The notes under the pieces are model-generated. The model was not told the origin of the DNA, made no database searches, and worked only from the letters and a program-made list of their open reading frames with translations. A stretch of DNA of 63,493 bases, filler included, from Olpidium bornovanus S191 (taxonomy: Eukaryota > Fungi > Olpidiomycota), in the NCBI GenBank assembly GCA_017911155.1. It is 28 parts of 28 records of this genome, joined end to end, with 100 filler letters (N's around TTAATTAATTAA, not from the genome) between each part and the next. Parts side by side here need not be neighbours in the genome. Positions count along the whole stretch, not along the records: positions 61,034 to 63,493 come from JAEFCI010001562.1; 27 more parts are not named here. One strand, written 5' to 3'. The position numbers were made by a program, and so were the translations under genes. Shown piece by piece: positions 61,034-63,493 of this stretch. Every line of letters begins with the position of its first letter. Position 1 is the stretch's first letter.

Positions 61034-62600
61034 CACGCATTGAAGGTCTACCATTGTTTTGTATGATATTGGCTCCACGAAGCTGTTGATAATCTCCGCA
61101 AATGTCTCGGCAGACACCTTGGCGCGTCCCACCACGGTGGGATCCCTATACATGCACGTAAAGGAGGAAGTCAAGGCGTACTTTGGCGATGGGTCGAGGC
61201 GTAGTGTCGCGAACGAAAAGCGAAAACCGGCCAAACTCGAGGAAAAATCAAAAAACGTTGACGCAAAAGGATATGATTCCCAAGCTCTGCAGGCCTGTTC
61301 AATTGCCGGGACTCGATCCCCCGGAGTGCATTTGTTTTCGAGATACTTTTCAGAGCACTGCGACATTTCCTTCAGTATCTCTAGCAGATTGCCCACGAAG
61401 CAACAAACAGGGTACCAAGGTCGGCCGTGGAAAGAGGGAAAGAAGCGCGTAATGCGACACAAAAGCCCGAGCACAAATACGGGACCAGAGTAAGCAGCCG
61501 AATCGCACCTGCCGAGTACTCTTCAACCTTGAGGTCAACATCCCTTTGCACTGTCCTGATAAACACCATTACCAGGTAGCCAAGCACAGCCACCACAAAG
61601 ATGTTGAAAGTGAGCTGTAGGTATCCCGAGATCACGTATGGTAAGCTGTGGTGATCGAATGTTGCCGCCTTTGGTGATGTTGTTGAGGGAAAAAATCCGT
61701 GCATATACGATCGGCCTCCATTTTTCTACAGCCGTAGTCCCAAGCCGCGAGTGCAAAATCAATCAGCACAGCCAGAGAAACGCGGGCATATGTACTCCTC
61801 AAAGTTGATCAGCCCATGGGTACCGCAGCAGCTACCGCTTCGGTCTAGAGAGATTTAAGGCTCACCTTCCAGTCCCTTTCGCTTCCGTTCCCGTCATCGT
61901 CCTCGTCGCTGTCGCCGGCCCGCCAGCACTTGGTCTCCGATCGCGCCCTTTTCCGTCGGGCCTTCTTCAGCGAGTGACCGGCCGGCGGTTCCGACGGAGA
62001 CGGATTCGACGCGCGAAACCTCAGGCTGCCGACGCCGTCGGCCAGAAAATTTGCGGACGGAGCGGCGATGTTCGACGCGGCAGTTGACGGGCGCGAGAAC
62101 ATGAACGGGCCGCCGAACGCCATCGTGGTTCCGTCCGTCTCTGGTGCGGCGTTCACGGTGGAATGGGAGCCTTTTTTTTAAAAAGGTGAATGAGACCGCT
62201 TTGCCAGCACACGGGCACTAAGAAAGAGAACAGCACAGGACTACGCCCCGACACACGGTTTTTGGGAGCGTTTAAGATGGAAACGGCGGTACGCGCTCAA
62301 GGCCGGACCTCGCGGCCTATCGCCGCCGTATCCTTTTTATGCCCGCAACAACACGTTGCCCCAGTTCAAGCTTCCTATACTCACGCTTGAGACCGGCGGC
62401 GATCATGCCGGCACCTTGTACGCCGGTTTCGCTTCCGGCTACCACTGTTGCCTGTTCGGAGGCGTCGGCTGCTTGTTCCGGGTCAACATCGGACTGTGGC
62501 GAAGAACGCGTCCCGGAGGGCGCAAATATGCTCGTCCTTCCGGAAGCGCTGTCGTACTCAAACTCCATGGGAGCCTCCTTCGGGCCGACGGCACGACGGC
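61034..62600 (-). CDS. BRL1: Brr6/Brl1-family nuclear envelope protein, 3'-truncated
   Basis: EAPMEFEY, LPYVISGYLQLTFN, DVDLKVEEYSA|EILKEMSQCSEKYLENKCTPGDRVPAIEQACRAWES|CMYRDPTVVGRAKVSAETFAEIINSFVEPISYK, with four conserved Cys. Confidence 0.93.
61158..61274 (-). other. U12-type (minor spliceosome) AT-AC intron, 117 nt
   Basis: 5' site ATATCCTTTT; branch site GCCTTGAC with the A 13 nt from the end; 3' site TAC. Removing it restores WES|CMYRDP. Confidence 0.88.
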
Positions 62601-63214
62601 CACCCCCCCTTTCAGCGACGGCGAGGTCAGCTGGCGGTGGCCTGAGGAAGCGTGCAGCAAATGCAAGGCGGCCTGGCGCGCCGACGCCAACATGTCTCGA
62701 CTTGCGTTTTTTTTTTTTTTTTGCCGAGGTCCGGTTCACCGACTAAGACCCCCCCTTTCGTTTTCCCTTCCAGTCGGCACTCCGCAAGAAGAGCGATTGG
62801 ACGACGGCAACGTGTGCCTGCCGCAGTCGCGGGCGAGGCAGCGTCTAACGCCCTGAAGCCCTGGGGAGAACCGATTGAGCATGAAGGTCGAGGGCGACGG
62901 GGGCGAATGCTGGCAGAATCATCACGGGCGTGATGCACCGGATTCAGCCGAATTTCCTGTTAACCTTTCCGGCGAACGGGACGCCGGCAACGGAGCGCGT
63001 CCGCCTGGGAGCCTCGGGAACCTGCGGGTATCCCCAGCGATTGCGGACGCAGCCTGAGTACCGGATGTTGGATTAGTCGATGGAGCCGCCCAGGATTACC
63101 GCGCTTTGGCGGCGGAGATAGACTGACCTTCAACTTTTATTAGGCTGGCGTTTTTCTCCCGCGTTTGGCAAGTTTCGATTGGTCATCTGCTAATTTAACC
63201 ATTTTGACCCGAAG

Positions 63215-63347
63215 GCAGATTCCTGAGGCAGACCCAGAATGCAAATTTCGAGAGTAGATCGGAACGCAAACTCGGAACGCAGATTCCAATGGCAGATTCG
63301 GGGATTCCGCAGATTCAGAACGCAAATTTGGAGGCTGAATTTCGAAG
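63215..63347 (+). repeat. Degenerate 13-bp minisatellite, about 10 copies
   Basis: GCAGATTC/GCAAATTT-headed units start at about 63215, 63228, 63241, 63254, 63266, 63279, 63292, 63309, 63322 and 63334. Confidence 0.85.
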
Positions 63348-63493
63348 ACAGACGCAGTCAATAATTATGGGCACTGGGCACCTTGCGGTTGACAGTTGCG
63401 GCACGCTGCAAGAGATCGCGCTGCTAATCGCCGTATCATTGAACTGAGGGCGGCTATTGAGATCCGTAGACGACATTTGCTGTACTTGCATGC

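Follow-up and report, generated by a model that had tools for sequence, protein, structure and literature searches.

On the minus strand of DNA from the root parasite Olpidium bornovanus S191, nucleotides 61158-61274 of the window (the whole stretch of DNA that was analyzed, 63,493 nt in length) constitute a genuine U12-type AT-AC intron, a reading to which we assign a probability of about 0.93. The intron, which is 117 nt long and in phase 2, is the fourth in an apparently single-copy gene of the BRR6/BRL1 nuclear-envelope family on contig JAEFCI010001562.1. Its identification draws on the sequence itself, a joint in assembled RNA, the Pfam profile of the protein family, and a composite splice motif.

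Splice signals of intron 4

Introns of the U12 class have either AT-AC or GT-AG termini and contain no long polypyrimidine tract apart from the branch site. On the gene strand, the ends of intron 4 read TC/ATATCCTTTT … GCCTTGAC-12 nt-…TTTAC/G; with its immediate flanks, the intron begins as gaatc/ATATCCTTTTGC and finishes as GCCTTGACTTCCTCCTTTAC/gtgca. The sequence ATATCCTTTT (61274-61265, minus strand) fits the U12 criterion /RTATCCTT. Within it, the 5' splice site, ATATCCTT followed by TT (61267-61274, minus strand), is an exact match to RTATCCTT, for which only 0.09 matches are expected by chance in shuffles of positions 61034-63493. The branch-point sequence CCTTGAC (61170-61176, minus strand) is the sole CCTTRAC in 61034-63493. 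Seen as GCCTTGAC (61177-61170, minus strand), this motif differs from the ideal, TCCTTAAC, in that its R is G and the leading T is missing. Its branch A lies 13 nt from the terminal C of the intron. Just 12 nt, TTCCTCCTTTAC, follow the motif, and thus there is no room for a separate polypyrimidine tract. The composite ATATCCTT…CCTTRAC…AC is found once in 61034-63493 and in none of 100 shuffles. The exact 5' site, the CCTTGAC branch, and the AC end therefore bear out the preliminary description, which had ascribed a full set of U12-type signals to this AT-AC intron. The GC content of the intron is 48%, and its length is a multiple of 3 without a stop codon.

The same description held that no GT-AG alternative exists at the site. 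This too stands: when all GT..AG pairs around the site were enumerated, none gave back the WES-CMYRDP segment of the Brr6 domain. The sole in-frame GT..AG candidate, 61262-61146, was rejected because it deletes the fourth conserved cysteine. A second RTATCCTT, GTATCCTT, is located at 62328-62335 on the plus strand. It lies antisense within intron 1, has neither a branch motif nor RNA coverage, and is considered a chance match.

The BRR6/BRL1-like host gene

Contig JAEFCI010001562.1 (2,460 nt, window positions 61034-63493) contains a single minus-strand gene, whose model was built from the sequence and then compared with RNA contigs. Exon 1 (62385-62714) includes a 5' UTR that extends, in an RNA contig, to at least 62714, and the ATG at 62568-62566, which opens the reading frame MEFEYDS…. 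Sixteen consecutive T (A on the gene strand) occupy 62707-62722, at the transcribed 5' end, and the longest RNA contig breaks off within this run, at 62714. Farther upstream, about 650-770 nt before the ATG, degenerate direct repeats of a GAACGCAGATTC-like unit occupy 63211-63340, a stretch without RNA coverage. Intron 1 (62171-62384, 214 nt, GTGAGT…AG) is removed at a joint seen in RNA of runs X1 and X2, with the cut reported at +1. Exon 2 (61866-62170), supported by RNA contigs and by translation, encodes a low-complexity N-terminal region, and is followed by intron 2 (61726-61865, 140 nt, GTGAGC…AG), for which there is an RNA joint in X1. The first transmembrane helix is encoded in exon 3 (61509-61725), where the Brr6 domain also begins, and intron 3 (61381-61508, 128 nt, GTGCGA…AG) is spliced at the joint 61380/61509 in both X1 and X2. 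Exon 4 (61275-61380), which ends in …EILKEMSQCSEKYLENKCTPGDRVPAIEQACRAWE-S, contains cysteines 1 to 3, and exon 5 (61052-61157), CMYRDPTVVGRAKVSAETFAEIINSFVEPISYKTM, contains cysteine 4; like exon 3, both are present in RNA contigs. The start of intron 5, GTAGAC… (61034-61051), is cut by the contig end, and the RNA contigs stop there, ending at 61051. Homologues diverge after the KTM at the end of exon 5, and the intron position after this KTM is conserved among them.

Translated as far as the contig end, the spliced product is a 306-residue member of the Brr6/Brl1 family. It matches Pfam PF10104 (Brr6_like_C_C) with 89.5 bits against a cut-off of 25, and exons 3, 4, and 5 tile the profile as positions 1-39, 40-75, and 77-113, respectively. 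Intron 4 is located between conserved cysteines 3 and 4 of the domain. Its excision joins profile positions 75 and 77, position 76 being the Ser codon that the intron splits, and the 39 intervening codons have no match to the profile. Removing the intron thus makes the PF10104 match contiguous and restores both WES-CMYRDP and the fourth cysteine, in agreement with the earlier assignment of this gene to the Brr6/Brl1 family. Moreover, the 39 residues that the intron would encode are absent from 17 of 17 aligned homologues.

In Brr6 and Brl1, two membrane-spanning segments flank the cysteine domain. The first hydrophobic segment of the Olpidium protein, LQLTFNIFVVAVLGYLVMVFI, is encoded in exon 3, and the contig ends short of any second segment. 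The family is defined by four conserved luminal cysteines (PMC3206342). Here these are found in MSQC, NKC, and QAC within exon 4 and, after splicing, in SC-M within exon 5, and so the set is complete only once intron 4 has been removed. The gene should be called BRR6/BRL1-like only, since assignment to either of the two yeast paralogues would rest on a polytomous tree backbone.

Deposited annotation

For the assembly, GCA_017911155.1 (JAEFCI, O. bornovanus S191), non-axenic zoospores were collected by washing cucumber roots, and the resulting sequence was binned and then annotated with MAKER (PMC7865070). In the deposited annotation, the gene is split into two models (61052-62568, corresponding to 926-2113 and 2128-2442 of locus L012). 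The upstream model runs from the ATG at 62568 to 61381, which is the last base of intron 3, and so it appears to read into this intron. The downstream model, P0001 (105 aa, 61366-61052), translates intron 4, giving …AWESYPFAST…SSFTCMYRDP with 39 in-frame codons. The predictor read through intron 4 because the intron is a multiple of three without a stop; the probability of a frame staying open by chance over 39 codons, computed as (61/64)^39, is about 0.15. As had been proposed, then, standard GT-AG annotation misses this intron. When 312 fetched proteins were searched for further retained-intron signatures with the regular expression W..YPF, only P0001 of this gene matched.

Removal of intron 4 from RNA

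Precise excision of the intron, with its ends at 61274 and 61158, had previously been claimed. Contigs assembled from RNA of two independent studies, run X1 of study P1 and run X2 of study P2, now contain the joint 61157/61275, which skips exactly 117 nt. The ends at this joint are GT..AT on the plus strand and, consequently, AT..AC on the gene strand. The support consists of assembled contigs rather than read counts, with a depth of the spliced contig over intron 4 of about 130 in X1 and about 15 (15.3) in X2. Introns 1 to 3 are also skipped in contigs of X1 and X2, at CT..AC on the plus strand, that is, at GT..AG on the gene strand. Because the same contigs splice three GT-AG introns, they represent spliced RNA (cDNA) and not DNA.

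One X2 contig of 131 nt (61175-61304, depth 5.1) runs unspliced across the 5' site of intron 4. The X2 RNA contigs include no unspliced form over the three GT-AG introns, and in X1 no unspliced contig over intron 4 was found. The unspliced X2 contig, a single one, may reflect partial retention or slow splicing of a minor intron. Spliced contigs dominate in both X1 and X2.

The RNA contigs contain two variants of the gene, which differ at 61097, 61121, 61249, 61546, 61670, 61977, and 62003, among other places; differences number about 5 over the 107 nt of exon 5. The two variants, each of which shows the AT-AC joint, could be alleles or co-occurring strains. Two raw-read runs bearing the same species label, X24 and X18, yielded no reads of the locus, and no locus reads were present in the approximately 6% that was sampled of each of the very large runs X15-X24, from 2026. 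The species label of these runs could refer to a host, or the gene may be expressed at a very low level.

Introns at the same site in other fungi

Conservation of the intron position in related fungi, which the preliminary description had suggested as a check, was examined by fetching the genomic loci of named homologues and mapping their exons, and by scanning JGI metagenome contigs with a 35-residue exon-5 alignment, which gave 80 Brr6 loci. Introns with AT-AC U12 motifs at the same site and phase are present in several lineages. In Calcarisporiella thermophila (XP_069249063.1, locus L002), the intron is AG/ATATCCTTTTTT…TATCCTTAACTGACATTTTTAC/T (105 nt, AT-AC, phase 2), and in Pilobolus umbonatus (Mucorales, L008), it is TC/ATATCCTTTTTT…TTCTTAACTCTATCTCATTAC/A (75 nt, AT-AC, phase 2). 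Metagenome locus L053 (GC 64-70%) has AA/ATATCCGC…GCCTTAACCGCGGTGCAC/T at 1397-1499 (103 nt, AT-AC, phase 2). The locus represented by both L056 (1422-1499) and L057 (815-892), again with a GC of 64-70%, has the motifs of L053 in a 78-nt AT-AC intron, also in phase 2. Finally, an AT-rich fungus in Logan ERR11523676 (L007) has a GT-AG intron, AA/GTAAGC…TTTCTAG/T, at 640-835 in phase 2. In all five (L002, L008, L053, L056/L057, and L007), the intron is in phase 2 and interrupts the codon that precedes the one for the fourth cysteine, just as in Olpidium.

The Calcarisporiella and Pilobolus introns share with the Olpidium intron the site, phase 2, the ATATCCTTTT 5' site, and a branch sequence (TCCTTAAC or TTCTTAAC) that is 13-14 nt from AC. 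They differ from it in being shorter (105 and 75 nt) and AT-rich, in containing stop codons, and in being correctly spliced in the deposited models, whereas the 117-nt Olpidium intron, with its 48% GC and open frame, has been mis-annotated as coding. In L053 and L056/L057, the 5' site, ATATCCGC, is weaker, and the branch sequence is a perfect CCTTAAC, 11 nt from AC. Outside the two splice motifs, no similarity among these orthologous AT-AC introns was evident by eye. Similarity confined to the motifs is the pattern that purifying selection on the U12 signals would leave.

Many loci have no intron at the site. In the JGI metagenome scan, 77 of the 80 Brr6 loci read straight through W-x-x-C. The intron is likewise missing from this position in Umbelopsis, both copies of Basidiobolus meristosporus, Rozella allomycis, Paraphysoderma sedebokerense, Tieghemiomyces (intronless), and locus L001. 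A GT-AG intron at the identical site and phase, as in L007, is the pattern expected of U12-to-U2 conversion. This U2-type intron is a candidate for such an event, in which it would be homologous to the AT-AC introns and would have changed from the U12 to the U2 type. In a maximum likelihood tree of 56 Brr6 proteins, L007 groups weakly with Mucorales. The protein of the Olpidium gene and that of Calcarisporiella sit on a backbone polytomy in this tree, which neither dates the intron nor lends support to the taxon.

Taken from its distribution (Olpidium, two orders of Mucoromycota, and one further lineage) and not from a reconstruction, the intron appears to be old, dating from no later than the ancestor that Olpidium shares with Mucoromycota, and would later have been lost or become U2-type elsewhere.

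Several other features of these loci may be recorded. The lengths of four of the five AT-AC introns are divisible by 3 (117, 105, 75, and 78 nt; the fifth is 103 nt), and the Olpidium intron is the sole one free of stops; the multiple-of-3 lengths are probably due to chance (P about 0.05, with cases that are not independent). A GT-AG intron after …V[IV]GR/AKVSAE is common to Calcarisporiella, Umbelopsis, both Basidiobolus copies, and Pilobolus, where it follows …VVAK, and is missing from the Olpidium gene (comparison of L002, L004, L005, L008, and L011). The introns that follow EEYS and SYKTM are shared widely.

Alternative explanations

Two other accounts of the 117 nt deny that they are a minor intron, and we regard each as very improbable. 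The segment could be coding, an in-frame, lineage-specific insertion of 39 residues as translated in P0001, with the spliced contigs representing a minor isoform or an artefact. Its length, a multiple of 3, its lack of a stop, and the X2 contig of depth 5.1 that is unspliced across the 5' site (61175-61304) would all be accommodated by this idea. However, a frame open over 39 codons has a chance probability of about 0.15, and the spliced forms are the dominant ones, at a depth of 130 with no unspliced contig in X1 and at 15.3 versus 5.1 in X2. In addition, the insertion would sit between Cys3 and Cys4, where no homologue has one, and the orthologous introns are either interrupted by stop codons or of a length not divisible by 3. 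Alternatively, intron 4 could be one of the rare AT-AC introns that are U2-type, spliced by the major spliceosome, in which case it would be uninformative about the minor one. It is well established that AT-AC termini by themselves do not define the U12 type, and the scan for minor snRNAs covered the contig alone. In AT-AC introns of the U2 type, the 5' site resembles GTAAGT (ATAAGT), and the branch is distant and accompanied by a polypyrimidine tract. Intron 4, in contrast, has ATATCCTTTT and a CCTTGAC 13 nt from its end, and four other lineages have kept both motifs in their orthologous introns, although the remainder of these introns cannot be aligned.

A third account accepts a real U12-type intron and questions its owner: the contig would come from a fungus contaminating the non-axenic preparation, for instance a relative of the Mucoromycota. 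The assembly consists of 13,695 short contigs binned from a metagenome (PMC7865070), Calcarisporiella supplies the best full-length homologue (53% identity over 232 aa), the tree is polytomous, and two large runs with the same label yielded no reads of the locus. Against this, the authors of the assembly removed contigs that clustered with reference genomes of Mucoromycota, Zoopagomycota, Dikarya, and chytrids (PMC7865070), and eight RNA runs from studies P1 and P2, all with one organism label, contain 27-46% of the sampled words of the locus. Furthermore, at 53% identity, Calcarisporiella is no close relative. We consider contamination unlikely, if less so than the two preceding accounts, and favor a U12-type intron that belongs to Olpidium.

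Minor splicing in early-diverging fungi and its probable use in Olpidium

U12 introns and minor spliceosomes in fungi outside Dikarya have been documented since 2006-2008, with minor snRNAs found in Zygomycota and Chytridiomycota in 2008 (PMC2396436) and a broad survey in 2023 (PMC10639083). About 4 U12 introns have been reported in Rhizopus and about 20 in Phycomyces, and the predictions of 2023 comprise 205 minor introns in Rhizophagus, 249 in Basidiobolus, and none in Dikarya (PMC10639083). An AT-AC intron is thus the expected kind of thing in an early-diverging fungus, where minor splicing is already established. Like the U12 introns of Rhizopus oryzae, Phycomyces blakesleeanus, Rhizophagus irregularis, and Basidiobolus meristosporus, the Olpidium intron has the same 5' site and branch consensus and occurs in a fungus outside Dikarya, the kind of lineage in which minor snRNAs are kept (PMC2396436, PMC10639083). 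Its phase, 2, accords with the reported tendency of minor introns to avoid phase 0 (PMC10639083). It also resembles the classical AT-AC U12 introns of animals and plants in its termini, its /ATATCCTT, a CCTTRAC some 10-15 nt before the 3' end, and the lack of a separate polypyrimidine tract. There are differences as well. Neither of the two gene copies in Basidiobolus, which is the richest of all fungi in minor introns, is interrupted at this site. Some of the Rhizophagus minor introns can be aligned with those of other species, which supports them (PMC10639083), whereas BRR6/BRL1 has no animal or plant orthologue and so offers its U12 intron no positional comparison with genes of these groups. 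Within the library of papers searched, none connects Olpidium to spliceosomes or to minor introns, and none connects Brr6 to minor introns.

In the established pathway of U12 splicing, from which the following steps are extrapolated, the U11/U12 di-snRNP binds the 5' site and branch sequence cooperatively (PMC2396436). For intron 4, for which the motifs, the excision from RNA, the restoration of WES-C, and the orthologous introns have been observed directly, the di-snRNP would recognize ATATCCTT and CCTTGAC together, and U6atac would then displace U11 at the 5' site. The bulged branch A of CCTTGAC, 13 nt from the 3' end, would attack, and the intron would be released with its AC terminus, the short, fixed distance from the branch to the 3' end presumably selecting AC. 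A precisely spliced intron with ATATCCTT, CCTTGAC, and AC implies the minor machinery. It points strongly to the presence of U11, U12, U4atac, and U6atac in Olpidium, which would presumably carry the minor-specific proteins as well. As expected, an Rfam scan of the 2,460-nt contig JAEFCI010001562.1 gave no match.

Why such an intron would persist is a matter for speculation. One idea, to which we give little credence, is that an ancient fungal (or older) minor intron has been kept for hundreds of millions of years because its slow splicing or retention tunes the dose of a nuclear-pore-assembly factor; in Olpidium, retention would then yield an isoform with an in-frame insertion of 39 residues rather than a truncation.

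The established picture of minor-intron biology is unchanged by the Olpidium intron, and what it adds is modest: an apparently old, positionally conserved U12 intron in a gene absent from animals and plants. Other in-frame minor introns in assemblies of this kind may be hidden by annotation in the same way. For the organism itself, the intron provides evidence, direct and at the level of transcripts, that minor splicing persists in a fungus assigned to Olpidium. Among zoosporic lineages, Olpidium has been placed nearest the terrestrial fungi (PMC7865070), and minor splicing in this lineage helps to set limits on the time at which the minor spliceosome disappeared along the line leading to Dikarya.
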